Below are positions 1,776-45,705 of a DNA stretch of 64,000 bases, in pieces; the stretch's first letter is position 1, and every line of letters starts with the position of its first letter. A program made the translations under genes and the position numbers. Below the pieces are notes generated by a model. That model did not search any database. It was not told the DNA's origin and saw only the letters and a list, made by a program, of their open reading frames with translations. This DNA comes from Takakia lepidozioides (lineage: Eukaryota > Plantae > Bryophyta), in NCBI GenBank assembly GCA_030704615.1, contig CM060733.1:51894001-51958000 (forward strand), read 5' to 3'.

Positions 1776-3505
1776 GAGAGAGGGACAGATAGAGGGAGTG
1801 AGAGGGAGACATCAGGGGGCAACAAAGAAAAGAAAGAAGGTGGGGGGGGGGGAATGACTGAGCAACTACTGCTGCTCAGTCACTCCCCCCCCACATTTTT
1901 TTTTTCTTTGTTGCCCTCTCTCTTGGGGAAATAAAAGGGACAGATCCTACCTCTGTCAGGGGCTGACGTTGGTAGTAAGACTTACCTTCACATATAGAAT
2001 TAATCCGGGTTTTCCAGATATCCTCTAGAAATCCCTTCATATAAGCATCAATCTGCTATGTGTGATTTGCCCAAAAACTAGGCCTTAGAAGGGGCTGGGC
2101 TTTTGGCTCAGCCTCGAGACTTTCAAAGTTAGTAAACAGAGGTACATGCACAATTCCCTTGATAGATTTGAAGAGAGCGTCTCTTTGGTGAGAGAACCCC
2201 GGACAGTGTATCAGCAATGAATACTATCTTCAGGTTGCCCACACAACGGGCAATTGCACTCTCCCTTTCCTCTCTGCTTCTGTTTACTGTTCAAAGGTAG
2301 GCTTCCTACCCCGAGTTTAAATTTTAGTCTGGTACCAAGAGTGGGATAGACCCTTGAGCGCATCCATGATGTTCTCCCCCATGTCACAGATTGGAAACAG
2401 GTTCAGGGAGGTTTTCTTCCTAACATCATTTTCATCGGACAATTTTCTGGTAACAGACATGGCTTTGGACACTACACTCTCTAAGTCAGATTTATCCAGC
2501 AAGGCCAAGACTTGCGGGTCCAGATTCAGATCCTTGAGAATCTCTTCTACTCTCTTCTGCCAGGGCTTAGTCTGTTTTAACTTAGGATATCTGGTGTTGG
2601 ACATATATTGCAGCTGAACCCACCATCTGACCTTGAAATTATCTCATCGGGAGCTTAAAAGAGAGCAGCACAGAAGAGAAGGATAGAGGGAGAGGGAGAG
2701 AGGGATAGAGAGGGACATAGAGAGGGAGACATCAGGGGGCAACAAATAAAAGAAAAGAAGGTTGGCGGGGGGGGGTGACTGAGTAGCTACTGCTGCTCAG
2801 TCACTCTGCCCCCCCCACATTTTATTTTTCTTTGTTGCCCCCTCTTTTGGGGAAACAAAAGGGACAGATCCTACCTCTGTCAGGGGCTGATGTTGGTAGT
2901 AAGACTTACCTTCACATATAGAATTAATCCGGGTTTTCCAGATATCCTCTAGAAATCCCTTCACACAAGCATCAATATGTTGTGTGTGATTTGTCTAAAA
3001 ACTAGGCCTTAGAAGGGGCTGGGCTTTTGGCTCAACCTCGAGACTTTCAACGGGCAATTGCACTCTCTTTTTCCTCTCTGCTTCTGTTTGCTTATCAAAG
3101 GTAGACTTCCCGCCCTGAGTTTAATTTTCCGTCTAGTGCCGAGAGTGGGTAGACCCTTGAGGTCATCCAAGATGTCCTCCCCCATGTCATAGATTGGAAA
3201 CATGTTCAGGAAAGTTTTTTGCCTAACTTCATTTTCATCAGACAATCTCTTGGCAACAGACATGGTTGGACACTACAGCCTCTAAGTCAGATTTATCCAG
3301 CAGGGTGAAGACTTGCGGTTCTAGGTCTAGGTCCTTGAGAATCTCTTCTACTGTCTTCTTCCAGGACTTAGCCTATTTGACAGGGCGGTGGGCGGTCCTA
3401 TTTCCAAGATATAGAGTCAATTAACTTTAGATATCTGGTGTTGGACATATGCTGCAGCTGACCCCACCATCTGACCTTAAACTCATCTCGTCGGGAGCTT
3501 AAAAG
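1776..3505 (-). repeat. Tandem duplication (~0.85-0.9 kb units) of a LINE ORF2 3' fragment followed by a GA-rich hairpin
   Basis: Units at about 1776-2665 and 2670-3505 share GGGACAGATCCTACCTCTGTCAGGGGCTGA...TTAATCCGGGTTTTCCAGATATCC and both end at ATCTCRTCGGGAGCTTAAAAGAGAG. Minus-strand peptides (WW.QLQ.MSNTRYPK...VEEILKDL...TSLNLF...KLRAGSLPL...RGKGECNCPLC) resemble the post-RT/Zn-knuckle C-terminus of RTE/RTEX-type LINEs. Confidence 0.75.
1815..1925. repeat. Quasi-palindromic hairpin repeat, copy 1 of 4 (others at about 2735-2845, 3540-3690, 8480-8600)
   Basis: Arms GGCAACAAAGAAAA..G-run..TGACTGAG / CTCAGTCAC..C-run..TTTTCTTTGTTGCC, flanked by GA/TC microsatellite. Copies 3 and 4 appear inverted relative to copies 1 and 2. 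Confidence 0.75.
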
Positions 3506-8458: not shown

Positions 8459-9069
8459 GAGGGAGAGAGAGAGAGGGAGAGAGAGGGAAACCAAAAAAAA
8501 AAAAAAATGGGCCTGGGAGAGTGACTGAGCAGGTGGTGCTCAGCAGCTGCTCAGTCCCCCCCACCCCCCACCTTTTTCTTTTCTCTTTGTTGCCCCCTCT
8601 CGAGACCCCCAGCACTTGCTACTTTCACCCCCCGACATGCCTGGTTTTTTTTTTTTTTTTTTTTTTTGATCTGGATTGTGGAGGTTGTTTCCTAATGAGG
8701 CCAACTTGTGGGTTTGCATGAGAGGTGCCAACTTATGGGGAAAGAGAAGAAGTCCCTGCCCTAAAGACCCGGGGGGTGCACTCTTTATAAACTGTGCGTA
8801 TCACGTGCGTTCGTCGTCTAATAAAAAAACCCCCTGTATACGGGTCCTTGGATAATTTATACCCCCTCTGTACATATTTTTTGAAGATTATAAAACCCCC
8901 TCCTGTAAATATACAAAAATTACAATTTTTAAAAAAGTACCCCCTTCTGTTTGTATATTCTCATTTTCCATCATTAAAAATAACCCTCCAATATGTATAT
9001 GTATGTTTTTTATATTATATCGAATTTATTCATTTAAAACATAATAAAATATAACAATTAATTAAAAAA

Positions 9070-12000
9070 TTATTTGCCTTTGATAAAGTTGTCAAAGACT
9101 TTTCGGTCATTTGCATCAAGTACATATGTGTTTGACTTGACATTGTACTTTAAACATGCTAACGCGATAATGGAATCCAATCAACCATCATGTTATCCGT
9201 CAAATCGTACGTATAGACCTCTCCTCGAATTTTTTGGTACCATGCTAACCCAATCTCCATATGAGAAGGACGCTCCAATAAATCAACAGAATCCCTACAT
9301 TCTACAAACCGCTTATTGATTTTCTTCCGCATTCTTTGAACCCTGCCCAAATACCAAGTGCCTTTGGTTGCTCCTCTGTCAGGTTTTCCCTGGTCTGCCT
9401 TTTTTTGTTTGTAGTTTGGATCACAGTCTCCTCATCAACAAAAAAACAGCACAATCCGAACCCCATCCCAGCTCGTGGCTTTGTTGCTGGTAGTTGGTTT
9501 GTTTTCTCGGCAAAACAACATCGATGCACTTCTTACTCGTGTCAATCTATCCTTGGATAGAGTAGGGTTGCCATTGAGTTGGCTAACCAAAGTGCTTTTT
9601 GAATATGGTCTTCCCCTCTACTTTGACAAATGGAACCACCGCCTTCGGTCCATCTTTCTCTTGTTCAAACTCGTCAATGACAACATCCAGAGTATGTCTC
9701 AATTCACTCTGAATAAGTACCTCTTCCGCATGATCATCCAAAGATTGGCTCAAAACATCCTCCATTGAATTCGAAGGCCCGCACACCAATTCATCTTCCA
9801 CGACCTCATTTTGAATATGTGTGTCTGCATTAAGAGGACAAATAGAATCTATGGCATCGACATCATCACCCTCCCTCTCTATGCTTTTGAATAGCTCGGC
9901 CTCCATTTGTCTCTCAATTGTCCATGGCTCATTCCACCAATCCAAGTTTGTCGCTTTGTTTGGTTTCATCCCAAGTTTATGGCATAAAAGTTGCGCTTCT
10001 AGAAATCCAGTTTTCAAAGCCTCCACAATGCAATCATCCGATTGGACAGTAGAAAAGTCGGACAAATCAGCAAGGGGGATACCTGGCTTCTTCTCCAAAG
10101 AAAACCAAATGTGTTCTTGTTTCTTGTGAGCTCTTGAGAACTTGGGTCCTTTTGGATTTACCTCGAACTCGGATATGCGTGTTAATGCTCCCGCACTCTC
10201 AATCAAATCACACCCGTCATATGTCCTCTCATTCCGTAACATACCTCCCACTTTGCTGAAGAATATTTCACACACATCTGAACCAACAAGACTCAAAGGA
10301 ACTTGCACATGATTAAACTTATCCTTGAACAATTTGATAGTAGAACCACGTAGTGGCATGAAATTTGTAAATCCAAGTATGCTTCCCTGCTAATGAAGAA
10401 GGATTTCAGATTATACACCTCGTGGTGGAATAACCACAACTTCCACAATCTTAAAAAAAACGATACCTTCGCAGCAGATTGTACCCTCTCACACAATGAC
10501 ATGTGAGGAGACAAAAAATGTCGATGTAGCATGAAATGATGTATAGGTAAATTTCAGTACCTTTGGTCCTCTCCCTTCGATGATTCACAGTTGATTGTAA
10601 CTCCTCAAACAAGCTTGCACCTTCCGAGATGCCAGTCGTTGAGCTGCTGCCCAATTCTGTCGATCTTCTCTTTTGATATCACATTCCCGAAGTCCATGCT
10701 TGTCCACTGAAAATGAATGGTAGACCAATAACACATGATTCAATGTAGCAACCTCATCACCCAACACCAAAGTCCGTGATGCACTGTCCAAGGGATTTAC
10801 CAATTTTTTCCCATTGTGGATGAAGTCCTGATCATGGAGTCCGTATATATCTCCCTCGTTGCACACTCGACCTGTAAACAACCATCATTCCCAGGGATGC
10901 AAATCTACTTCCAGCCCCATTGGCATAATCTTCTAACATCACTTTTCTCCTCCTACTATCTCCGTCTGAAGCATGCCCAATTATAGGCCCAACCACGTCC
11001 CTCACATATTTGTCCCACAACTGTCTCACCACTTCCATTGTGATCTCACAAAATTGTTGTCAAATCTATTGCAAGTGAGCTGGATTACCAATACCAATCG
11101 AGGTAATCGTACATGTAGAGGATTTGCTATCAACACTCTGGCGTAATGGGCAACCACATTGTTTTTGAATGCCTCCACAATATGTTCGTACCCTGATTCC
11201 CCTTCTCTCACTTGCACCACAAAATTTGAAATACATACATGGTTGTCTTGAAGCCCACAGAACCCGAGAAGGGTGTCATCCCTAGCAATCCAACGTACCA
11301 ATCGTTTCACAACAGTTTCATCTTCGGCCACCATCACTGGGATGCTTCCCATTGGAATATTTGCATCTTCCATCACATCTTTGTAAATTCCAGCCACATG
11401 CTGAAATATATCATCCCTTTCTCCCGCTCTGTACTTCAAACCTTTCCTCAAAGACCGTCTTGTAGTATCAATAGAAGGACCCCCACATTTGAAGCCAAAA
11501 AATGATGCAATCTCGGACCCCCCCAAAGCTGCACAGTCTCAAACATTGTTTTTGTGCTAGTACCATACCTCTTCCCTTGTGGAGACCTGTCAATATTCTT
11601 GCCCATATCAACAAGAAAATCCCACAAACTTTCTTTTCCTTCAAAATCCCCCCCCTATGTGCATCAACATATCACGACAAAATTTGAGAACATCTCCTCT
11701 TTCAATTGCCTCAATCCCAGACTCCAAACTCCTACATCGCACAGACAAGGATGCCACTTTGGTCCTGGCCTCCCACAATTTGAACCTCAACTGTCTCACT
11801 CCTGTCTGTTTTTGTAAACTTGTTTGACAATCTCGACATTTCCAAGATATGACAACCTTCTTCCCTTGCCAGTATCTCTCTCCCCTCTACATTCCATGGC
11901 ACCTTTTCTCTATATACCCTCATTCTGAAGTCATTTTCCAAGGAATGAAAGAACATGCTGAACATCTCAAGTTTGGAAATGGCTCCCCATCCAATGACAC

Positions 12001-13499
12001 TCTAAAACAATCCGCGTGCCGAAACGTACCAACCCTTATGCTCTTGATTGGTTAGAGTGATGGTTGCATTTGTCAACGGCTCGACATACCACTTCTTTCC
12101 TCCCTTGCTATCTTGAAGGAATGGTTTCAGACTTATTCTCTGCTGGTTGTACTCCCACCATTCATCCCATAGGCCCCAACACAAACTGTCTCTTCCTTTG
12201 TTGCATTGGGACCTTTGCTGTAATTGTCAATCCTCGATCAGATCTGCCCGTTGGGCAGCGTCAACACAAGTGTATGGAGTTTGTGACGAGGATGCTCCCA
12301 TTGTTGATGCCACAATTGGATTGTCAAGTGGTGGGGACGGCAACACAGGTTGACTGACCAAGAAAGAGCTTAGATCCCGTTGCTTTACATCTTTGGCAAT
12401 CATAGGCTTTGGAGGCCTTCCTCTCTTTTTGCAAGGTCCTTCACTACTTCCAACCTTCTGGCAAATCTCTGCATCGACATGAGTTTTTCCTTTCACATGC
12501 TCTGTCAAAGAAGATTGCAAAGAACCTGTCCTTGGAAACAAGAGTAGCCACTTCGAATCAAGTGGGCACCTAATCCTTATGGAACCCAACTGCGAATAGT
12601 CTCCAATTGTGGCTTCCACAATCTCAAATCTGTTTCCAGGATTGTCCTCACAAAACTGAGCGACTTCCTCTAATGCCTCCTTCACCCTATTCTTCTTTGC
12701 ATCTAATGCTTCATCTGCATTTACAGGGCTGATGACACTTGTGATGAACCCGTCCCATGACGCCTCTCATAGGCTATGCGATGCCCCTCACTCCTCAAAT
12801 GAGATCTCATAAAGTTTGCACATGCATTATATGGTTGTTGTTTTCCCATACTGTGCATAAACATCCTCACACTCAACACACCATATGTGGAACATTGCTT
12901 GTCCTTGTTGATCCTTTGTCATCAGCTCAAACTTGTCACATCGTCCTTCTGCAGAGATTTTCCTTTCAACGGCTCTAATCTCTTTCTGCCATTTTTGAAT
13001 ATCGTTGGATGTAGCCAATGTGCTGCACAATCTACCAGATCTCTGCTGAAGTGCATGCTCATGTGCATGGTCTTCATTTCCACCATCGCCAGCAAAGGGT
13101 GTATCAGGGTCCATCCTCATCTTGGTAGACACTGGTGCCGGGTCCTCGCGTGGTCTGTCCTCATGCAAGATCGTAGAACCACTGGAAGATAGAGGTCTTT
13201 TTTCAATCCTTGGTCCCCATCATTTTGGTCTGAAATCTTAATGTGTACAGTATCCCTTTCAGAACCATCCTCTCTTCTTGTTTGGCTGAAAGGACACTAC
13301 CCCCCATGGAAAGGAAATGAAATTTTTCTGAGACAAGCTCATCACCTATAATTTCTGCTCGGATGCATTTTATGTGACACCTTGCATAGTGAACACAGAA
13401 CCAAGCATGTTTGGTGATGCCATCTCCTCCCACAAGCAGGACTTTTACTTCCAACTCTTCTTCCATGATGAGTTCACCTGCAAATGCAAATGAAAACAT
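9070..13499 (-). pseudogene. Frameshifted DDE transposase with P-element/THAP9-like core motifs and N-terminal Zn-finger-like motifs
   Basis: Consecutive minus-strand ORF pieces give AEDET..L.GFCG (D ~11321), GHASDGDS (D ~10965), DQDFIHNGKKLVNPL (DxxH..K..N ~10820), DRQNWAAAQRL and GSDVCEIFFSKVGG (E ~10268). Order and spacing match P-superfamily motifs. At least 5 frameshifts. N-terminal WCVEC...H and IRCP...EHVKGKTH. Possible further spliced 5' exons to about 13975. Confidence 0.75.
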
Positions 13500-14649
13500 T
13501 TCAAATCAGACCTTGATAGACCATAACAAAGCACCCGGGTTGGAAGGTTCCAAGTCTTGTTTTATACAACCCTAATGCTGTCCAAGCAGGACTACGTTGA
13601 AAAGAGATGAAATATACAGAAGCAAGTACCTGATTGATGAGTTTGACGTTGCTAATTTTTGCTACTGCTATTGACCAAATGCTGCTACTTCCACTACTGG
13701 TAGCCCTCTTTGGGTGATCCTGAACCCACAGTCCATCCTTGCATCAGCGGCTAGCCCTCCCTCCACACTAACATATTTAAATACAAAGTTCTGTCAAACT
13801 CCCTACGATGTTGCATGAAGAAAGCTCACCTTGTTGACAATATTGTCCCACCGCTGTGGATCAAATTTATAGAACTCCTGCCAGCGCTGTTCCTTGCTCC
13901 AAATCTGGCCCTCTTGGATGATTTTGCACCCACGATCCTCTCCCTGCATCAACAGCTACCCCTCCCTCCACACTAACAATGCGTACATCATGCCTCTACA
14001 GCTACTACTGTGGCTTCCAGTTGACCATCTACCCATGCAGGTTTCTTGTAGCTATCCTTCCACATGGAATCATAGGTAATCTGGAGCTTGGAATCCGCCA
14101 TCTAGAAATTTAGGGACGACTCTGATAACAGGGAAAAACAGGCTGAAATGTGTTGAAGAAGGTACCTTCATTAGCAATCCCTTGTTCTATCTATTGCGCT
14201 GCTGCCGCTGCTATTTCCAGTTGACCATCTACTCACACTGTCCCACCACTGACTGGGGTCAGAAAAGTATTAATTCCTTGAAAGCTTCTCTCCATCTCTA
14301 TTATCTTTTTTTAGGTACTGTCATGCTACCACCTCGGCAGTAACTTGCAAAGTCACTCCAGAGCACCGCAGATCCACCCAACGAGCTAACTTACAAAATT
14401 CAATACATATGCTTCAGGGCTGAGTCTGATGAGAGGGAAAACCAGGCTGAAACAGGTCAAACCAGAAGGTGCCCTCAGGCTGAAATACGTTGAAGAAGGT
14501 ACCTTTCATCAGCAGTGCCTTGCTCTATCAATTGCGCTGTTGCCACTGCTGTTTCCAGTTGACCATCCACCCACATTGTCCCACCATTGACTGGGGTCAG
14601 AAAAGTGTCTCATTCCAAAGCTTCTCTTCATCTTTGTGGTGCTATTGTA

Positions 14650-15290
14650 GGGTGACTTCAATGCCCAAGTGGGCAAAGGGCTCCATCAGGACGATATCAT
14701 TGGGTCTTCTGGTGAGGACGAGCTGAATTCTAATGGCAGACGGTTAATTAACTGTCTAGAAGAGCTTCAGCTTTTGACCTTGATTAACAAGACAAGAGGT
14801 GACCAAGTGCAGTGGACTCGTGAGAAATCCCAAACTGGGGAACGTTCCATTGTGGACTATATCATAATGGACAAAAATTTGTTCCCCCAGTGTGCCAATG
14901 TGTTGATCGACAGAACTGATATTGGTACCTCTGACCACTTCCTGGACTGAGATCAAAAGGTGTTTTCCCAAGGCTAGAGTAGAAGAGATTCTCAAGGACC
15001 TGGACCTGGATCCGCAAGTCTTGACCCTGCACCCTAAATCCAACTTAGAGGTTGTAGTGTCCAAAGCCATGTCTATTGCCATGAGATTGTCTGATGAAAA
15101 TGAAGTTAGGCAGAAAACTTCCCTGAACTTGTTTCTAGTCAGTGACATGGGGGGAGGACATCTTGGATGACCTCAAGGGTCCACCCACTCTCGGCACTAG
15201 ACTGAAATTTAAACTCAGGGAAGGAAGCCTACCTTTGAACATCAAACAGAAGCAGAGAGGAAAGGGGGAGTGCACTCTCCCAAGTGAACC
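14650..15290 (+). pseudogene. LINE ORF2 fragment: APE endonuclease C-part fused directly to the C-terminal region (RT missing)
   Basis: GDFNAQVG..NSNGRRL..SIVDYII..GTSDHF, then WTEIKRCFP|RVEEILKDLDL..TSLNLF..TRLKFKLREGSLPL. Confidence 0.8.
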
Positions 15291-16533
15291 TGCATCATTC
15301 AGTTGGCAAGCAAGTGTCTGAAAAATTGATCCATTTGAAGACACCACGGTGCAGCTGAGCACGGCCTGACATGACAACAATTAAACATCATACTGAGACA
15401 AGAGAAGCAGTCAAGGACACAGTCATGCATATGGCAGCAAGTGATCACCCTTCAAACATGATTGAAAACATACATGAGGTCAAAGGCAATTCGAAATCAG
15501 CGAAGGGTACTGCAGCTAAGAGTTGGAGTGTCTTTAAAGACAAAGGGAAGAGAAAGAAACACTTCACTGGCAATGAGGGGAGGCTGTGGAAACGCCAAGA
15601 TGATGACACAAATGATAGAAATAACAGGGTTGGGCAAAGGATCTTGCAGGAAGAAGAAAGGGTATGTCAGCATGGAAAGGACGTGCAGCTCATTCCAACG
15701 GAAAGGGGAACATTCGTGCAGTTAAGTACAACAACCAATTGCCCTTCAATTATGGCTGGAATTTTCCAAAAGGCGAGGGATGATAAGGAGGAGAATAGGC
15801 CTGATACAGTGAGTTGCTTAGGGGCAATGAAACAACTTTCTTTTGAAGAAATCAGCAATTACACAAGCAAGGGAAGGAAACTATAGTCCTTGTATGTGAA
15901 AGGAGGGTAATACGGTGCAAGTGCAAAAGGAAGGGAGGCACAAGGAGGTCACTTACTGCTAATTGGGATATGCTAGAGATCACAAGAAGGGAACATGGGT
16001 ACCCAGTAAGCAGAAGAGCAGCTGAGCAGGTGTGGGATGATGTTCGGGCTGCAAACACAACGGCGAACCAAGCAACTGTCACTACAACTAAAGATACGAG
16101 TAAGTGGAGCAACATGATGGCAGCATGGAATATCTGCCGAGGGATGCTGGTTGGCAAGGAGCTGCGACATATGGTGAATGAGGAGAGAGACCTGTCCCGA
16201 ATCAACATGGTTCAAACACGATCTGAAAGATGTAAAGAAAAGGTGCATTTGAAGGCAGAAGGGTATTATTTTCAGACTGGTGAAGAGCCTAATTACACAA
16301 GGGAAGAACGAGAAGGCAAGCAAGGAAAAATCTCACAAGCGGAAATGCAACCCTAAACGGCGAAAGTAGAACATACACGACGAGCACTGGAGAACATACC
16401 CATGAAACGTCGAGCATGAGCACCACGTGCAGTGAAGGGAAGAATGTATGGGGGGCAGCAGTTATAACTGAACTACAAATGCGTTTGCTGCACTCAGTGA
16501 CGGAAGAATACGGAGGAGCGGCGAAACTGCCAT

Positions 16534-16800
16534 ATGTGTTTATCTATGGACATTGGACACAAAAGAAAGGATGTTGGGCGCACCTGCGATTCATGGAAAA
16601 CCAAAAGACAACAGGTGTCGATAGATTGCGGAGTTAGTGGAGCTCAGGACATTCTGCCTGAGTATGTGAGACTTCCTACAGACAATAAGGGACATTTTTT
16701 CACAGTGCGTCTAATCGAAGACTGCTCTTCAGCAGTCTGCTTCAACTGCAGTCAAATGCTCCACATTAAGGTGGATTGCCCAACAAGAAAGAGAAAGCTT
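16534..16800 (+). pseudogene. Gag/LINE-ORF1-like CCHC zinc-knuckle fragment inside element 1
   Basis: CFNCSQMLHIKVDCP fits CX2CX4HX4C. Confidence 0.5.
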
Positions 16801-19544
16801 TCTCCAGCATCCAAGCTGCCACTGGGCAGCCAAACTAGAGGGTCAAATGGCAGGGTCTCCCTCCAGTGCAACAACAACAATCAAGTGCTCAATCCCAAGA
16901 TCTCCGTTCTTCGGCCCAAACTCTTCCCCCCAGTGATCACTTGCAAGTTGCGGGCAGTAGAGGTGCCTTCCAACGCCATATCAGCAATCAGGACCCTATG
17001 CAACTCGAAGCGGCATCCACCCCTCGCAGGCAGCCACTTGGCAAGAAAGATAGCAGCAGAGCTGCTGCACAAATCAAACCCTAAACTCCATCAGCACAAA
17101 AAGCTATGCCTTCTATGGTGGTCCACTCTCCAAAATTCTTACCAGTATTGCAAACAATCCATCTTTTGCAAAAACTTGCCTCAGGCAGGCTTCATTTCCA
17201 GGCCAGGACCTGAAAGGGTGCTCAGCCCTGGAATCCACGGAAGCGTCATTAGCAACATGTGTCACGCCAATCATTTATAAGAAAGGAAATAGGCCTAATG
17301 TGCTCATTACCTCTGATGACTAGGAATCTAGTGCCCTCACCACATTGTCCTACCATGCCCTGTGGAGAGGAGGGGAGAGGAGAGGAGGGAAAAGAGAAAG
17401 CCCGCGGAAGGGAAGGCGAACGCGGGAGAGGAGGAGAAAGAAAAGAGAAAGCCGCGGGAGATCAGGGGAGAAAGATCGTGGAGCGAAAAAAAAAAAAAAA
17501 CAAACAAACTAAACGACGATCCCACGATTTGATCCCGGGATGCATCGCGGCAAAATCGCCATTCTTACCACTACACTATCCCTTAAAACTCAACAACCCC
17601 CTCCTGTAAAATTATATTTAAGGTGTTTTAAACCCCCCTCTGTATGTATAATGTTGTACATGGGGGGGTTTAAAATACCCCCTCCTGTGCACGCACGTGG
17701 CTGGTACATTTAATGAGGAGTGCACCCCCCAGGCCTAAAGAAAAGGGCGGACAATCTGTTTGCTCTGCCAGCACGTGTGACGCGCCAGGGCGTCTCACGT
17801 TTACCAGCCCCGTCGACAACCGCAGCCGGAGGGCTCGTCTGCCCCCCCCGAGGCCAGTACCCCCCCTCTTGTCCCCATCTTGGATGCGCCAGGGGCCAGC
17901 TCAGCCAACTCTCTTATTCGGGAGGTTGTTGCAGAGCCGGATGCTCAGTTGAGCACACCCCCGGCCACCAAGATGGGTGAAATGTACCTTGGCAAGCACA
18001 TCGCCCGTTCGGGGGCCCGGTAATATGGGCAACTTTTGGATGTCACCGGGGGATAGCGACCCCTTCCTCCGTAGCGAAGGCTGCACTTGCCAAGGCCCAA
18101 CGTCAGGTTCAAGGGCCTTTGAAAGTGGTCGTTGCTAGCCCAATGTTGTCGATGAGGGAGGAGGAGACAATGAGGGCCAATGAAGTGGCCGAGATAGCGA
18201 AGCGCCTCAAAGTAGTCAAGCCGGGTGAGGGCTTCTACCCTGCTAAGCATTTGGCCTGGGGGGTGCACTCCTCATTAAATGTACCAGCCACGTGCGTGCA
18301 CAGGAGGGGGTATTTTAAACCCCCCCACGTACAACATTATACATAACAGAGGGGGGTTTAAAACACGATAAATATAATTTTACAAGAGGGGGTTGTTGAG
18401 TTTTAGGGGGTAGTGTAGTGGTAAGAGCGGCGTTTAGGCCGCGATGCACCGCGGGATCAAATCGCATAATCATTCTTTTGTTTGTTTGTTTGTTTTTTTC
18501 TCTCCGCGATCTTTCTCCCCTTCCCTCCTGCGGCTTTCTCTTTTCCCTTTCCTCCTCTCATCTCCTCTCCACTCCTCTCCCGCGTTCGCCTTCCCTTCCG
18601 CGGGCTTTCTCTTTTTCTTCCTCTCCTCTTCCCTCCTCTCCACAGGGCATGATATTCTTCTTGATGTTTACAAGGTTTAGGGGAGAGTGAGCTTGGTCTT
18701 AGCAGGCCATTTTGTGGTGGTTTCTCAAAGACCAATCCGACATTACCTGACTACAGACACCAGCAGCACACCAAAGCGATCCTTTTGGGTTGATGGGAGG
18801 GCAAATCCTCCATGGGTCATGACACAAGGTCAAGGACAATGTGGTGAGGGCACCTTCTCCTTCGACCTATTTCAGCCTGTCTTGCCCTCTCATCATAGTC
18901 GGCCCTGAATTTGCAGCACTGAGCAGACCTGACATGAGTTTTTAGAAGATTGACAATGGTGGGACAACTGCAATCGCAAGGTGTGGCGTTTTCTTAAGGT
19001 ACGATGTGAATTTTTTTCCATCCTACTATTGCGGGCTCTTGCCTCCTGTTAGTACCTGATTTGGTATTCTTCCAGATGTTTACAAGGTTCTTGGGAGAGT
19101 CAGCTTGGTCTTAGCAGGTCGTGCTCAGCTGCACCGTGGTGGTTCTCACTGACCAATCCGTCGTTACCTGACTACAGACACAAGTAGGCACACACAAGAG
19201 GTCCTCTTTTGATCTTAGTCCAAACCAGGAAGTGGTCAGAGGTACCAATATCAGTTCTGTCGATCAACACATTGGCACACTAGGGGAACAAATTTTTGTC
19301 CATTATGATATAGTCCACAATGGAACGTTCCCCAGTTTGGGATTTCTCACGAGTCCACTGCACTTGGTCACCTGCAGTTGAAGTCCTTGCCCTTGGTTGT
19401 CTTCCTAGAGCGCCCCATTGAATCACCAATGTCTAAGACCGCTCTCCAGCCAGTTAAGGGACGAACTTCTTTGAGATTGAATTGATGTGGGACTCTATTA
19501 GAATCACTTTTGGTCATTGCAACCTTCAACGTACACCTGTTATC

Positions 19545-20756
19545 AATGAGAGAACCCCAGACAGTGTATCAGAAAATGAATACTGTCTTCAGATTGCCCA
19601 CACAATGGGAAGTGCACTCTCCCTTTCCTCTCTGCTTCTGTTTGCTATTCAAAGGTAGGCTTCCTGCCTTGAGTTTAAATTTCAGTCTAGTGCCGAGAGT
19701 GGGTGGACCCTTGAGATCATCCAAGATGTCCTCCCCCATGTCACTGACTGGAAACAAGTTCAGGGAAGTTTTCTGCCTAACTTCATTTTCATCAGACAAT
19801 CTCATGGCAACAGACATGGCTTTGGATACTACAGCCTCTAAGTCGGATTTATCCAGCAGGGTCAAGACTTGCGGATTGAGAATCTCTTCTACTCTGGTGT
19901 TGGGAAAACACCTCTTGATCTCAGTCCAAACCAGGAAGTGGTCAGAGGTACCAATATCAGTTCTATTGATCAACACATTGGCACACTGGGGGAACAAATT
20001 TTTGTCCATTATGATATAGTCCACAATGGAACGTTCCCCAATTTGGGATTTCTCACGAGTCCACTGCACTTGGTCACCTCTTGTCCTGTTATTCAAGGTC
20101 AAAAGCTGAAGCTCTTTCAGACAGTTAATTAACCGTCTGCCATTAGAATTCAGCTTGTCCTCACCAGAAGGCCCAATGATATCATCCTAATGGAGCCCTT
20201 TGCCCACCCGGGCATTGAAGTCACCCAATAGCACCACCTGACCTTTGGCAAGGAACGAAGCACAATCCAGTTTTACATCTTCGAAGGCTTTGTCTGCATC
20301 AGCACTAAGGGTCCCCTCTGTGGGCATGTAAACACAACCCACAAAGAGGTCCTTCGTACTCATGCCGCCCTTCAGATTCAGTTTTAGCCATATACTATGC
20401 TCATACCTCAAACCCTTGTTGATAATTTCACAATTGTCAAACAAGAAATCACGGACAAAGAATCCAACCCCTTTTTGACCGCGTTTGGCAAAGGCTGCCT
20501 TGAGAGTACACATCTTACCTGCCCATTTATAACCATTGACATCTCCAACCAGTTTATCCGACATTTCCCATGTTTCTTGCCCAGCACAGATATGAATATC
20601 ATGAGTCCGAAGAACTTGTCCTACTTCGAGTTGTTTCCTTTGGTTGGTCAACCCTGAGAAGTTGAAAGTGGCCAGCCGCAAGCCAACCCTTTGCATGTGA
20701 ATTGTTTGTCGTCTAGGTAGCTTGTGATTGCTCCTGGACGGCCAACCGTTCTGCAA
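19545..20756 (-). pseudogene. LINE ORF2 derivative: APE endonuclease fused to C-terminal Zn-knuckle region, RT deleted
   Basis: RLATFNFSGL..QET..VYMPTEG..LLGDFNARVG..SIVDYII..SDH (endonuclease motifs), then the same junction to VEEIL..KLKAGSLPL..GECTSHC as in element 1. In-frame stop at about 20187. Confidence 0.8.
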
Positions 20757-21145
20757 AGGGGGGACAGTTACCCCATGGATTCAACCTCATCCAGAGCATC
20801 AAACCGATTAGAAACTCTCAAGTTGAAGTCCTTGCCCTTGGTTGTCTTCCTAGAGCGCCCCATCGAATCACCAATGTCTAAGACCGCTCTCCAGCCAGTC
20901 AAGGGACGAACTTCTTTGAGTTTGAATCGATGTGGGATTCAATTAGAAGCACTTTTGGTCATTGCAACCTTCAACGTACCCCTGTTATCAAGTCTCGAGA
21001 TAGAACCATTAGCCATGAAATCCAAGCCTAAGCTAGAGCATGTAGTTTTTAAAGATATAGAGTCGATGTTTCCAAGATATAGAGTCGATTAACTTAGGAT
21101 ATCTGGTGTTGGACATATGTTGCAGCTGACCCGACCATCCGACCT

Positions 21146-23323
21146 TTGAATTCATTTGTGTGCGTGTGCAAGCCTGCATCCATAAAAAAGGGCAAAGAGG
21201 TGCATGGTTGCATCACCAAAGCTGGACTTGTACCGGATGTGATTATGAACAATACCCTTGTGGACATGTATGCCATTGTGGGAGCATTGAGGATGCGGAG
21301 GGAGTGTTCAACACTATGGCTGAACGAGGTGGTGTCGAGGAACACGATTCATCCAACAGGTCGATTTTAAACACAAGATTACTTCTGATTCCCTGCGGAT
21401 CAATAGCTACAAGAAAGTTGCGTGGGTAGATGGTCAACTGGAAACAGCAGCCGCAGCAGTGCATTTGGTAGGACAAGGCGCTGCTAATGAAGGTACCTTC
21501 TTCAACACATTTCAGCCTGTTTTTCCCTGTTATCAGAGTTTTTCCCTGTTTTTTCCTGAATGATGGATAGAGAATGGGTCCAAATTTATCCAAGAGGGCT
21601 GGACTTCAAGCTCCAGATTACCTTGATTTCATGTGGGGGTCAGTAGCTACAAGAAACCTGCATAGGTAGATGGTCAACCAAAGGCAGCAGCTGCAGCGAC
21701 ACAGTTGATAAAATCAGGCACCTCAACCATGACCACAGCTTCTGAAAGAGGATCAAGAGAGGGAGTCCACAATGCCTCTTCTGGCACTTCTAGGCATGTG
21801 AAGATACTTTGTGCGACAGCCTGACAGAGGCTCTACAGACTCTAAACCAAGGAGGCAGTTCAACAGATTCAGATATGTATGTCTGTCTCTTGCTTAAGTG
21901 CATCAAGATGGAAGGTCTCGAAGCTGGAAAGCAGGTGCACACTCACATTATCCAAAGTGGATTCACGCCAAATGTTTTTCTACTCAACACCCTTGTCAAC
22001 CTAAGTGCCGGAACATCAGGGATGCTCACCAAGTGTTCAACGGAATGCCTCAATGATCTTTGATCACGTGGAATATTATGTTGAAAGGATTTACCAAGCA
22101 TAGGTGTGGTAGGATTGTTTTGGAGACATATGAGCAAATGATGTGCGAAGCGGTGAAGCCCAACCATATCACATTTGTTTGTGTTTGCAATGCGTGTGAA
22201 AGCCTGGGAGCAAGCTGGAATTGTACCAGATGTCATCTTGAACACTGCCCTTGTATGTTTGCCAAATGTGGGTGCGTTAAGGATGTGAGGGGAATTTTCA
22301 ACACTCTGGCTGAACGAGATGTGGTGTCGTGGAAGGTGATGCTTGCAGGGTATGCACAGCAGGGGCAAGGGATGGAGGCTTTGGAGACCTATGAGCAAAT
22401 GATGGGGGAAAGGGGTGAAGCCTAACCACATCACAAGGCATTTCACCAGATTCAGATATGCATGTTTGTCTCTTGCTTAAGTGCATCAAGATGGAAGGTC
22501 TGGAAGCTGGAAAACAGGTGCATACTCACATCATCCAAAGTGGATTCACGTCAAATGTTTTTCTACTCAACACCCTTGTCAACATGTATGTTATGTGTGG
22601 GAGCATCATTGATGCTCACCAAGTGTTCAACAGAATGCCTCAATGATCTTTAATCACGTGGAATATAATGTTGGCAGGATGCAATGCGTGTCCAAGCCTG
22701 CGAGCTCTGGAAAAGGGGAAAGAGGTCCATGGTGACATTGTCAAAGCTGGAATTGTACCAGATGTCATTCTGAACACTCCCCTGGTGGACATGTATGCCA
22801 AATGTGGGTGCATTAAGGATGCGAAGGGAGTTTCCATGGCTGAACGAGATGTGGTGTGGTGGAGTGCGATGCTTGCAGGGTATGCACAGCAGGGACGTGG
22901 TATGGAGGCTTTGGAGACCTATGATCAAATGATGGGGGAAAGGGTGAAGCCCGACCACATCACATTTGTGTACATTTGCAATGCGTGTACAAGCCTGTCA
23001 GCTCTGGAAAAGGGCAAAGAGGTCCATGCCGACATTGTCAGATTTGCAATTGTATCAAATGTCATTCTGAACAATACCCTCGTGGACATGTATGAAGGGA
23101 GTGTTCGACGGTATGACTGAACGAGATATGTTGTCGTGGAGTGCGATGATTGCAGGATATGCACAGCAAGGGCGCGGGATGGAGGCTTTGGCGAATGTGT
23201 GGTGATTGCCACACAGCCACCAAATTCATCTCAAAGATAGCTAAGCAAGAGATTGTTGTACGGGATGCAAACCGCTTTCACCACTTCCAAAATGGTGTTT
23301 GTTCTTGTGGGGAGTATTGGTGA
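21146..23323 (+). pseudogene. Scrambled PLS-class PPR gene fragments ending in a DYW-domain C-terminus
   Basis: PLS motifs (GKQVHTHII, NTLVDMYAKCG, ERDVVSW..ML.GYAQQG.GMEAL, PDHITFV) with frameshifts and internal duplication (~21860-22110 vs ~22445-22680). 23192-23323 encodes [44 protein letters not shown] domains and the HxE motif are missing. Confidence 0.9.
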
Positions 23324-26009
23324 AATGAAATGTTTGTCACCTCATTGAATGTATTGAACTCTGTCAGCTGCGAGTCAGGTTGGACTCCAACAGTGGCAGC
23401 AAAGGCGCACGAAATCTCTTTTTGGAGAGGAATTCTCAACAGTAGGTTTTGAACATAATTGGACCTTGCGAAGGTTGAAACTGTAGAACAAGTTCAGAAA
23501 CTGTCCTAGTTGATGAACAGAGGTGCAGTGACTAGGTCTTGATGGTCTTCAAGAGGGTCACTCTCTGATGAAAATACCCAGGACTGTATATCAGAAAATA
23601 GAAACTTTCTTCAGGCCTCTTGCACATCGGGCATTGACAATGTCCCTTTCCTCTCTGCATCTGATTATTGTTCAAAGTGAGATTCCACAGCAAGTTTTAT
23701 CGAGGGCAAACAAATTTTTTTATTAATTTATTAGATTTTATTCTATTTTTAATGAATAAAATGATATAATATAAAAACATACATATACATATTTGAGGGT
23801 ATTTTTTAATTATTGAAAAGGGAAATATACATATAGAAGGGGGTATTTTTTAAAAATTACAAATTTCTATATATTTACAGGAGGGGGTTTTATAGTCTTC
23901 AAAATGTATGTACAGAGGGGGTATAAATGATCCAAGGACCCGTATACAAGGGGTTTTTTTTATTAGGCGACGAACGCATGTGATACGGACATTTTATAAA
24001 GAGTGCACCCCCCAGGGCATTTGGGGGGGGGGGGGGGAGGAGGAGGTATGGGCCGGTTTGGAGCGGCCTAGTCGATCAGCGACGCCGCCCCCTGAGCCTG
24101 AGTAGTCAGCAAAGAAGGGCCTGGACTACGGGGCGCCGCCGCCGGCTATGCTCCACATCTGGAACCTACTTACAGTGGCGCTCCGGGAGGGGATAACGCG
24201 GGCATATCCGGCAACGGGGACTCCTGCAACATTGGGTGACACTGGGGCGAGTCAGACAAGCTTGCAAAGGTACCCCTGTCGCACCTTGTTCCATTTTTTG
24301 TCCTTTCATTTGCATGCATGATTTTCTTTGTTGTTTTTTTTTTTTTCTTGAATTTGGGGGGGTTATTTGTCTTCAGGAGGCAACAACATGGCTGGCCTCA
24401 TTGGTGCAGTCTAGTGGGGTTGCCAATGAGGGAGAGCACGTGGTGCTCATGAAAGACCCGAACACCAAAGGTAAGAAGAAGATGCCTCGACCTCCCGAGA
24501 TCCCTTTTAACATCAATGAAATTGCTGCCGAGGAGAGAGAGAAAAGGGAGAGGGAGAAGGAGAGAGAGGAAGTAGCGGGGAAGGGGAAGGAGATGGTCGG
24601 GAAGGAAAAGAAGAAGAAGAAAAAGAAGTCCCATGGAGAGGAAGGGATGAGTGTGCATGCGAGGGATGACAATGGGGTAACAAAGGAGCAGGGGAAGGAG
24701 GCTACAAAGAAGGGAGAGAGTGGGAAGAAGAACATGGCCTTGGCGATAGAAGACGTGGAGTTGGCAAAGATCGTGGTGCCACCGGTGGAGGTGAATCGCC
24801 ATGGTGACCCCTACGGTGCGTTCTGGGAGGCTATGAAGAAGCCAGCCTTCGAACTCACAATGAGGTGGTTCCTTTTGCACATTGAGTGGGCTGATCAGCA
24901 CTTTGGCGCGAAGCGGGCGTATGCCCGTGAGTTAGACCGCCGGTTTCAGACAATTGGAGTGACACAAGGGTGCTGGAGATGGTGGGGCGAAACTTGAAGG
25001 ACGGGAGGTACCGTGCCAGACAGATCATTCGGAGGGCAATGGAAAAGGGGGCCATACCCAAACCACCTTATGGAATTACACAGGTTGGTAAATCCTGAAT
25101 CATTTCACCTTCTGTTTGTCGCATGTGCATTAATGAGGTGGATTCGATGCAACGTATGTGTGTAATTCACTAATTGTTGGGGGGGGGGGGGGGGGGGGGG
25201 GGATAGGTATCGTGGGATGCACTCATTGCGGGAGAGAATGATGCGGCAAACATGGCCAAATTTGAGCGGGCACGCGAAGCAACAACAGTCCGCCTTGACA
25301 AGCACGAATCCACACACAAATGGGGTGCCGACGGATCCAAGGGTTTTATCTTGCGATTTGTAAGTCATACTTCCCTATGTATTTTGTTATGTCTTCTTTC
25401 TGGCTCCATCCCTGCTCTATCATCGTGAAGAACTGACTTTAATTTGTGGCATGTGTAGCAACGCGCATTTGAGAGGAAGCCATCTCCGACAGAGTACAAC
25501 TATGCCAATGAGCATGGTTGACAATCTTTCATGAAGAACATGGCCAACACGGAGGGGATGAGTGCACTACAGGGCAGTAGTATGGATGAGGGCGGGGGTC
25601 ATGGCCAGGGATTGGATGCGAGCTCTGTGGGACTTAGGGGAACGCCGCCTCCTTTAGGTGCTCTGGCAAAGGGCGCGGAGTCATCAGGCTCATCGGATAG
25701 CTCTGAGTCCTCCACTGAGGATAAGGATGAGGATGACTAGTCCTAGTCCATGTAGGTCCCAGGGTCAGCCTACTGAACCCTTGTAAGGTTTTCAGCTTAT
25801 TTCTTGTAAATATATTTCCATATTCCATCTTCCATCTTATTCATGTGTCACACCGTCCTCACCCTCGATTCATGCTTGCTCAATTGTGTACCTGCTAAAT
25901 CAGAGAAATGGAAGCTGTCAGGTCTCCCTCCCCCAAAACAAAACCAGGCAGAAAACAAAAACCACTCCCAATTCACCCCCAAAATCAACCCCAACCCTCC
26001 CCAGGCTAG

Positions 26010-43300: not shown

Positions 43301-45705
43301 ATGCTGTGGAAGAGGAGTCTCGACGTCGCATGGAGGCAGAGGACAAAGCATGCCAAGAAGCAGAAGCAAGAAAAATGGCTATGGCGGCCTTGCAAAAGAT
43401 CCATTGCCAATACCGGGAGTACAATTTTGAGGAGCTTGAAACAGCCTGCAAGAATTTTGCAGCAGATTTGAGGATTGGGGAGGGTGGTTACGGTATTGTT
43501 TACCAGGGCAAACTGCACCACACCACCGTGGCTGTTAAAGTTCTCAATCCTGATGGGCTTCAAGGTCCCCTCGAGTTCCAGCGCGAGGTTGGTTTCTATA
43601 ATAGGTTGTTCTAGCATTATTAATATCATATTTATACTTTAGTATTCTACGTTTGCAGTAGGAAAAAATGTTTCTTGTGTTGGGTTCTGGATCAAATATT
43701 CAGAGCACTTGTTCCTTCCTGCACTTACTGAGCCTAGCTTTGAACCATGCTCTGGCTGAATGTGATGTGTGAGGACCTTTGACGCTGTTTTGACATGAGA
43801 TTGATTAAAAACAAATGTAAAAAATCACCCATTTCCTACTAGTGCCTGTTTCTTTGGAGCGTCAGGAGAAAGAGGCAGTCACCTTGAGGATGACCAATTG
43901 GATTGGGTCTTGGAAGGCTGATCATGGCGCCGGAAGTGAGCTGGTGAATGAATGCAGCTTACACCTCTTTCCTTCCCCTTGAAAAGTATGCATGCTCACA
44001 ACAATGATGGGAATTACTGCAGGTGGAGCTGCTTGGACGTATCCACCACCCTCACATGGTTATGCTGCTAGGATGTTGCCCTGACAAAGGTTGTCTGGTA
44101 TATGAGTTCATGGCTAATGGCAGCCTGGAGGACCGATTGGTTTGCAAGGGCGGGTCTCCACCCTTACCATGGCAGACTCGCATCCGCATAGCTGCAGAGG
44201 TGGCAACTGCATTGCTTTTCCTTCACAGTACTCGGCCTGAGCCCATTGTTCACCGGGATTTAAAACCAGGCAACATTCTGCTGGACAAAAATTTTGTGAG
44301 CAAACTTGGGGATGTGGGGCTTGCAAAACTTGTGCCTGCGAGATCCCCAGGGAGTGCTGCCTTCAAGAGTGTCTACTTCCGTGACAATACACCTGTGGGT
44401 ACTTTTGCATACATCGATCCAGAATATCAAAGAACGGGTACATTTGGGCCAAAATCAGATGTCTATGCTCTGGGCATTGTGATGCTGCAACTTCTAACAG
44501 GAAAGCCTCCTGTTGGAGTGTTCGAGCTGGTGGAGGATGCTCTTGAGAATGGATACCTTGAGAGTGTGTTGGATCCTACAGCGGGGGAGTGGCCCCATGA
44601 ACAGGCCGAGGAGGTGGCTTGCCTGGCACTGCAGTGTGCTGAGATGCGTCGCAAGAATCGACCTGATCTAGAGAAAATTATTCTTCCTAAATTGGATAAA
44701 ATCCGAGTTCGTTTTGAGGACTTTGAAGCAAAGAATGTTCAAAGGAGATTACTGGCCCCAGGTGGAGCGGCCCCTGTAAAGGAACGTGACTATGTCGTTC
44801 CCGCCATGTTTCTCTGCCCCATCTACCAGGTACAATGCATTACCTATTTGTTGGAAAACCACTGGCGTGTGGTCGGGCTAGGGATTGAACCTAGGACCTC
44901 CCCCATTCCGGTGGGGTGCTCTACCACTGAGCTACCCATCCCGTTCTGTTCTCAGAGCGCCGTGCAAGGGCTATAGCCTTGACACCTCCAACACTCCCCC
45001 TCAAGGCATAGCCCTTATGCTAATGCCCACACATTCTGACCACCGCCCCAACCTTGGCTCTGATACCATGTTGGAAAACCACTGGCGTGTGGTCGGGCTA
45101 GGGATTGAACCTAGGACCTCCCCCATTCCGGTGGGGTGCTCTACCACTGAGCTACCCGTCCCGTTCTGTTCTCAGAGTGCCGTGCAAGGGCTATAGCCTT
45201 GACACCTCCAACACTATTAACAACATACTCAGTGCTGAAAAACCAGTCTCTGCAAGCATTTCGTTTCTTTGTGGGCAGTTGAATCTCTCACATTATTCAT
45301 GAACTCTTATCATTTCGATTACTATCTGCTGTTTGAATACCAATTTTCTAAGCAATATGAATCTGCCTTTCTGCAGCTTACCTACACGATCTATCCTCTC
45401 CCAGTTCTGCTTGCATATGTTCCCTCATCTGATCCCTCACAACTTTGTTTTCTGGAGTTGAGCAGGAAGCCATGGACGACCCGGTTATTGCAGCTGACGG
45501 GCACACATATGACTACGAGGCAATCAAGGAGTGGCTAGAGAAGCACAACACCTCTCCAATGACAAATCTTAGACTCTCTCACAAACAACTGACTCCCAAT
45601 CATGCCCTGCGCTCTGCCATTTTGGAGTGGCAGGCCAAGGTCTGTGCACGAGTAGGTGATGGAACTTTTAATAGATTAAGGAACCAATTAGAAAGCCATG
45701 TATAA
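37387..45705 (+). CDS. Plant U-box protein kinase (USP-like domain, coiled coil, Ser/Thr kinase, U-box; PUB33/34/35-type) with long Q-rich N-terminus
   Basis: Phase-consistent GT-AG exons: ~37387-39442, 40280-40401, 40878-41002, 41101-41315, 41460-42343, 42894-43040, 43159-43587, 44023-44829, 45466-45705. Motifs: VVVAV..SKDALKW (USP), IGEGGYG.VY, VAVK, HRDLKPGN, DVG, GTFAYIDPEY, FLCPIYQEAMDDPVIAADGHTY..SPMTN (U-box). Start codon uncertain; an upstream exon is possible. Confidence 0.9.
42372..42657. repeat. Intronic tandem repeat, 3 x 94-96 bp, nearly identical
   Basis: Units start at 42372, 42468 and 42562 (TACTGCTRTTTGGTTTTTCAAAT...GTTACAAGCTC). Confidence 0.95.
44849..45213 (-). mobile_element. 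TRIM (miniature LTR retrotransposon) with tRNA-derived LTRs, Helenus-like
   Basis: Two 145-bp LTRs (44849-44993, 45069-45213; TGTTGGA...TCCAACA; 2 differences). 75-bp interior with minus-strand PBS TGGTATCAGAGCC and PPT GAGGGGGAG. 5-bp TSD CTATT (44844-44848, 45214-45218). Confidence 0.93.
44870..44941 (-). other. tRNA-like sequence inside LTR (second copy at 45090-45161)
   Basis: GGAYGGG TA GCTC AGTGGTA GAGC A CCCCA CCGGAAT GGGGG AGGTC CTAGG TTCAATC CCTAG CCCGACC A. Intact A/B boxes and D and T arms; imperfect anticodon arm. Confidence 0.85.

Follow-up and report, generated by a model that had tools for sequence, protein, structure and literature searches.

Internally deleted P elements of Drosophila, of which KP is an example, originate in interrupted gap repair, and their junctions can carry filler DNA. 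It is accepted that gap repair gives rise to internally deleted P, Ac/Ds and Mu elements and also to Pack-type elements. The survey of Pack-TYPE transposons covered the MULE, CACTA, hAT, PIF and Mariner superfamilies in rice, maize and Arabidopsis (Gisby and Catoni 2022, PMC8903248), and the words P element, moss, bryophyte and PPR are all absent from the text of a 2026 review of gene capture (PMC13317346). On the side of the host genes, the expansion of the large families of PPR-DYW editing factors in hornworts, lycophytes and early mosses is an open question to which the published answer is retroposition; the 2026 survey that gives this answer counted 2,016 PPR genes in Takakia and ascribed their expansion to dispersed duplication by retroposition (PMC13386178). 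Here we analyzed 64,000 nucleotides of Takakia lepidozioides DNA (assembly GCA_030704615.1, contig CM060733.1, positions 51,894,001 to 51,958,000 of the forward strand), which we call the window and to which all coordinates below refer. It contains two members of one transposon family, element A and element B, the second of which had been singled out by a prediction made from the sequence without database searches (hereafter the original prediction). Element B is a cut-and-paste insertion with an 8-bp duplication, has kept both ends, has lost the transposase gene and has a mosaic interior with sharp junctions. The PPR-DYW cargo that it carries is dead. We consider it likely that B is a non-autonomous member, of the Pack type, of the DNA transposon family of A, that it arose by interrupted gap repair and that the family forms a P/THAP9-like branch.

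Ends, target duplications and orientation of element B

Element B spans 18255-24016 (5.76 kb) and is flanked by a perfect 8-bp target-site duplication (TSD), GCATTTGG, which was read directly from the sequence at 18247-18254 on the left and is identical at 24017-24024 on the right. The chance of an eight-out-of-eight match at fixed positions is about 1.5e-5 per element. The perfect TSD shows that a unit with both ends inserted at this site, and the proposal that B had moved as a unit is supported by this duplication of its own. Direct reading and alignment to A also showed that the coordinates of B, its TSD and the lengths of about 400 and 330 bp had been correctly assigned to its ends in the original prediction. 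The 18-nt terminal pattern GGCCTGGGGGGTGCACTC was found four times in the window, against 0.02 occurrences expected by chance, at 8766(+), 17735(-), 18253(+) and 24018(-), and the positions and strands of these four sites pair them as two elements, A and B. Element A (8768-17733, minus strand) lies between perfect 8-bp TSDs, CCTAAAGA, read at 8760-8767 and 17734-17741; it is a broken, transposase-bearing copy of the family of B, in the opposite orientation, and was used as the reference for what B has lost.

The family termini consist of CCYGGGGGGTGCACTC plus about 45 nt and are of the CCYGGGGGG... type, and the alignment of all four ends of A and B begins at their first base and extends for about 45 nt. 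In the left end of B the terminal inverted repeat (TIR) is imperfect, about 45 nt long and begins with CCTGGGGGGTGCACTC. Beyond the TIR the two ends of the family are unlike each other. The left terminal region of B (18255-18654, plus strand, 400 bp) shares 86% identity with the right end of A (17351-17733) once the latter is reverse-complemented, and the right terminal region of B (23696-24016, plus strand, 321 bp) shares 87% with the left end of A (8768-9087) read in the same way. Since the two distinct ends of B match those of A in reverse, B is a complete two-ended family member in the opposite orientation. Both elements also carry several subterminal copies of a CCCC(C)TCYTGTA-type motif that hardly occurs elsewhere in the window; the motif map places them at 8830-8950 and 17598-17680 in A and at 18345-18392 and 23876-23955 in B. 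They are candidate transposase-binding sites. A tRNA-like stretch that had been noticed by eye in the same family end (18405-18465 and 17525-17590), with D-arm-like and T-arm-like runs, was recognised neither by ARAGORN nor by Rfam.

The two elements stand head to head in opposite orientation, 513 bp apart (interval 17734-18254), and the ends that face each other make up an inverted repeat of 400 bp (17351-17738 and 18250-18654). Local hopping could account for such closeness, as could a preference for this region as a target. Long runs of G are present at 24025-24037 and 25177-25205, the first of which begins directly after the right TSD of B.

PPR-DYW cargo and mosaic interior

In the original prediction B was described as an element whose transposase had been replaced by captured fragments of a PPR-DYW gene. 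Comparison with A agrees with this description, as DNA derived from PPR and DYW sequence lies exactly at the position of the transposase of A and B is a non-autonomous member of the same family. No similarity to B was found in A 9088-14019, the span that holds every piece of the transposase. Followed along B, homology to A breaks off near 21680 (A about 14020) and resumes at about 23696 (A 9087); the approximately 2.0 kb of foreign DNA in B sits exactly where A has 4.9 kb with the whole transposase gene. Because homology to A stops and restarts at the borders of this block, the cargo appears to replace the transposase gene rather than to interrupt it. Consistently, the open reading frames (ORFs) of B matched only PPR, DYW and endonuclease families in Pfam, and no transposase gene is left in the element.

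PPR similarity is limited to 21143-23193 and is found nowhere else in the window. The broken genes, that is the transposase of A and the PPR cargo of B, were searched as separate stop-free pieces, and among those of the cargo Pfam recognised PPR_2 (1e-14 and 1e-10) and PPR (3e-12), as well as PPR_3 and PPR_1. Three segments make up the cargo, all on the plus strand: an isolated PPR piece with L/S-type motifs and a broken frame (21149-21350), a decayed PLS-type PPR array defined by the Pfam PPR families and the translations (21809-23191) and the tail of a DYW domain, reduced to its last 43-44 codons (23192-23323). DYW_deaminase was matched at 23150-23323 with an E-value of 2.8e-22, over positions 50-93 of the 93 profile positions only. 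This tail runs CGDCH ... CSCGEYW, is followed by a stop and is 60-74% identical to the C-termini of full-length relatives. The last PPR motif, of S type, is truncated: it breaks off after 'GMEAL' at 23191, and the DYW tail follows immediately; Pfam and the reading of the junction both agree here with the earlier claim that PLS-PPR pieces are fused directly to a DYW (EYW) C-terminus. The 2.2 kb of PPR sequence that had been announced is right for the span 21146-23323, of which about 0.46 kb (21351-21808) is not PPR.

About 240 residues are missing at the PPR/DYW junction, as judged from seven of the eight full-length PPR-DYW relatives compared, with the tail alignment starting at the junction. 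The missing part corresponds to the rest of the repeats, to E1 and E2 and to the DYW domain up to two thirds of its length, a portion that includes the HxE site. Two TGA stops interrupt the PPR array in frame, and it also shows several shifts of frame as well as private deletions. The array also contains a tandem duplication of about 590 bp, or about two PLS triplets (21845-22435 and 22436-22964, 86-89% identical), whose junction is out of frame and whose copies each carry private deletions. Both copies have the same TGA at the 'MPQ-stop-SLITWN' position, and this shared stop together with the out-of-frame junction indicates either that the duplication occurred in DNA that was no longer coding or that the parent was already a pseudogene. 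The features of a PPR-DYW factor are an uninterrupted PLS array, E1, E2 and a complete DYW domain with HxE and CxxC, and the cargo does not have this set. With its in-frame stops, its frame changes, its out-of-frame duplication and the loss of the HxE centre of the deaminase, the cargo of B is dead: as read from the DNA, it cannot encode an editing factor and is predicted to make no working protein.

The position of the cargo could be explained differently if a plain internally deleted B had come first and the PPR-DYW block had arrived later, either as a retrocopy made by a long interspersed nuclear element (LINE) or within another element (Helitron2-like, MULE or CACTA). LINE-derived sequence indeed lies on both sides of the PPR block, and the published view is that PPR genes of such plants have spread by retroposition (PMC13386178). 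Boundaries belonging to the PPR segment itself, such as its own TSD, poly(A) or Helitron ends, had been named in the original prediction as the sign of such an event, and none was found around the cargo. Neither of the cargo borders has a poly(A) or poly(T), no pair of inverted repeats exceeds chance level around 20950-23760, no hairpin-plus-CTRR (Helitron-like) end was seen around the cargo, no flanking direct repeat bounds the PPR block and no match was returned around the cargo by ARAGORN for tRNA or by Rfam. A later insertion would moreover need to have landed exactly in the deletion junction, as the borders of the block are the points at which homology to A stops and restarts, and the separate PPR piece, which lies 460 bp away between LINE and Y segments (see below), fits a patchwork and not a single insertion. 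Since the cargo and the transposase deletion share their borders, replacement is the more parsimonious explanation, the alternative being a deletion and then an insertion at that very point, and we regard a secondary insertion as unlikely.

The rest of the interior of B was mapped piece by piece. Inside the left terminal region lies a spacer (18655-19205) with a 125-136-bp direct repeat (18650-18774 and 19062-19197, 79% identical), 21 nt corresponding to A 17331-17351 and a 65-bp Y-like piece corresponding to A 14413-14477. It is followed by two abutting patches, the first of which (19206-19373) copies 19912-20079 with 96% identity and the second (19376-19546) 20821-20991 with 95% identity; the junctions within 19206-19546 are sharp, with 0-2 extra bases. 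The idea that the first patch came from A and not from B itself was dropped, the three copies being all 96-99% alike. A fragment of a non-long-terminal-repeat retrotransposon (LINE) with an apurinic-endonuclease-like ORF occupies 19547-21068 on the minus strand. Within it Exo_endo_phos was matched at 20187-20756(-) (1.8e-6, 28.3 bits), and 19606-20237 is 91% identical to A 14636-15282. In all, the LINE endonuclease debris of B amounts to about 1.9 kb (19206-21068), is itself a patchwork and is in part common to A; the original prediction mentioned neither this debris nor the sharing of interior sequence with A. Next comes an 80-bp segment (21069-21148) that is also present at 2577-2637 and 3401-3478 (92%) and whose similarity breaks off at about 21148, at the start of the PPR sequence. 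Two diverged copies of a repeat that we call Y (21363-21719), common to A 14015-14574, stand between the isolated PPR piece and the PPR array, and it is within them that homology to A ends. The DYW tail is followed by a 3' spacer (23324-23695), in which 23561-23677 is 77% identical to 19547-19663 and 2181-2296, a LINE-associated repeat. A zf-RVT-like identity for 19569-20102(-) and 23532-23693(-) was dropped because it had no Pfam support. Outside the two elements, 1776-3478 contains a tandem duplication of about 920 bp (1776-2126 and 2696-3050, 92%) whose units hold LINE-associated pieces also present in B (19547-19874 and 21069-21146) and in A (14976-15274).

Apart from the termini, the pieces common to A and B are the 21 nt beside the end of A, the Y repeat (A 14015-14574) and the LINE endonuclease piece (A 14636-15282, 91%); they have the same relative orientation in both elements, in an order that differs from that of A. 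These pieces bear on the possibility that B is a composite or macro-transposon in which two separate family ends moved a stretch of host DNA with a PPR pseudogene and LINE debris. Members of the family do insert close together, as A and B illustrate, and the interior of B is a mix of unrelated sequences. Inner sequence shared with A in a conserved relative orientation nevertheless fits a deletion-and-replacement derivative of an A-like progenitor and not two solo ends around host DNA, and for this reason we hold a macro-transposon to be very improbable.

Further downstream the window contains a protein-kinase exon and a PMI1-like gene with NT-C2 and PMI1 C-terminal domains on the minus strand (44023-44976 and 49150-54647). 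Among public proteins the closest relative of the PMI1-like exon has only 55% identity to it, so that the collections searched do not include the proteins of this genome.

Element A and the superfamily of its transposase

The pieces of the transposase gene of A lie on the minus strand from about 13500 down to 9400, and the gene is broken by stops and frameshifts. Its product is 45-50% identical to ORFs on the public contigs L001 and L002. The latter carries an intact homologue, the central piece of which is 50% identical to A over 393 residues. Relatives of the C-terminal piece, 38-55% identical, were found on ENA/JGI metagenome contigs and in the fern Adiantum nelumboides (L001, L002, L003; P0009), and none of the relatives listed here carries a Pfam annotation. 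A scan of metagenome contigs for transposase homologues with a single protein returned one locus. Element A is itself mosaic: the region upstream of the transposase gene contains the LINE endonuclease piece (14636-15282), an internal duplication of the Y repeat (14139-14297 and 14476-14633) and another ORF (16534-17280), which gave a weak zinc-knuckle match (E 0.004) under the cut-off.

The original prediction had called the family P-like. Searches of Pfam and of the PDB, the latter by phmmer and with profiles, matched no Pfam family and no PDB chain to any of the transposase pieces of A, to their homologues or to the profiles built from them, and on this side the call received no support. No THAP domain was found by Pfam in the pieces of A or in the homologues, and the same is true of the BED and hAT dimerisation domains; all that L002 and L001 gave was zf-C17orf113, a weak match (E 0.002) that missed the cut-off. 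Two AlphaFold models of the transposase, made from shallow alignments, were unusable (predicted local distance difference test, pLDDT, 49 and 37). What did stand behind the P-like assignment was the 8-bp TSD and the result of the Atlas feature search, which retrieves look-alikes by means of a protein language model. The C-terminal piece of A was placed with clusters carrying TNP-like_RNaseH_C, THAP9_C and TNP-like_GBD (PF21789/PF22824/PF21788; score 0.95), and the central piece of L002 with clusters carrying TNP-like_RNaseH_N, Tnp_P_element and TNP-like_GBD (PF21787/PF12017/PF21788; score 0.94, recognition 3104). All the family-named look-alikes belong to P/THAP9 families and none to hAT. The order of the domains also fits from N to C terminus, families of N-terminal domains being retrieved by the central piece and families of C-terminal domains by the C-terminal piece.

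Transposases of the P superfamily have a split RNase H-like domain and a GTP-binding insertion domain. A THAP domain is not universal within the superfamily, and 8-bp TSDs are made by hAT as well as by P elements. B could accordingly be a Pack-type element of a family that is hAT, or that belongs to another superfamily with an 8-bp TSD, and not P. This TSD length shared by hAT and P would allow it, as would the fact that no piece or profile matched P/THAP9 in Pfam or the PDB and that the THAP domain was not found; the hAT dimerisation and BED domains were likewise not found, and the named Atlas look-alikes are all P/THAP9 and in the right domain order. We take a hAT or other non-P affiliation to be quite unlikely, and the transposase is probably that of a very divergent branch of the P/THAP9 superfamily.

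Origin of element B and comparison with known systems

The progenitor of B would have been an A-like element that already had LINE debris upstream of its transposase gene, as suggested by the pieces shared with A. The transposase region of this element was lost, and some 2 kb of ectopic sequence, derived from a gene or pseudogene of the PLS-PPR-DYW class, would have been copied in. The most likely route is a synthesis-dependent repair of the double-strand gap opened by excision, a repair that was interrupted and accompanied by repeated template switching. Synthesis would have started from another copy of the element, switched to ectopic templates (the PPR-DYW locus and LINE copies) and ended with rejoining. 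Template switching would account for the sharply joined patchwork of short LINE copies as well. The cargo would then have decayed, or would have been dead already, and would have been further reshuffled. The cis-acting ends, which are the imperfect TIR and the subterminal repeated motifs, were kept, and B would move only if an intact family member supplied transposase in trans. Since A itself is broken, B would depend on such intact members.

Four points weigh against this origin. The first is that the parental PPR-DYW gene, the recovery of which had been suggested as a check of the capture, was not found in public protein collections. A word search with a 150-residue PPR ORF gave one match (37%), and a full HMMER scan with a 156-residue stop-free PPR piece gave 17,675 PPR proteins, the best of which, from the lycophyte Diphasiastrum, are only 45-51% identical. 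The second is that the presence of the cargo at the time when B inserted rests on parsimony. Thirdly, part of the interior of B may be backbone of the family and not captured sequence. Finally, the assignment to the P superfamily is made without support from hidden Markov models or structures, for a TSD length that hAT produces too.

If the preferred origin is right, element B indicates that PPR repeat units are also captured, duplicated and recombined by DNA transposons of the cut-and-paste kind, and it extends gene capture, in itself already known for Pack-type elements, to a transposon lineage that is off the usual plant list. A wider claim would be that in this seed-free host PPR-DYW sequence is regularly copied, recombined and scattered by way of DNA transposons, this P-like family among them. 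If this were true, some of the approximately 2,000 PPR genes, or regulatory small RNAs, would come from Pack-type shuffling rather than from retroposition, but we find it decidedly doubtful. The dead patchwork carried by B gives no support to the role in expanding, diversifying or silencing editing factors that had been put forward for the family.

Compared with the PLS-class PPR-DYW editing factors, the cargo of B has P-, L- and S-type motifs and a DYW end (CxDCH ... xYW), but differs from them in having no intact frame, no E1 and E2 and none of the first two thirds of the DYW domain with its HxE zinc-binding and catalytic site, and in having an array with out-of-frame duplications and deletions. 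With the deletion derivatives of the Drosophila P element, B has in common the cut-and-paste mode, the 8-bp TSD, the ends that were kept and the transposase region that was lost. In contrast to these derivatives, which are mostly simple deletions, B gained about 2 kb of host gene sequence, and the termini and transposase of the A/B family are unrelated in sequence to those of Drosophila P. In build B resembles the Pack-TYPE elements: it is non-autonomous, has TIRs, the ends of its family and a TSD but no transposase, and holds rearranged non-functional fragments of a host gene. It differs from them in that its ends come from a P/THAP9-looking lineage outside the superfamilies surveyed (PMC8903248), in that its host is a seed-free land plant and in that much of its interior is retrotransposon debris and not gene fragments.

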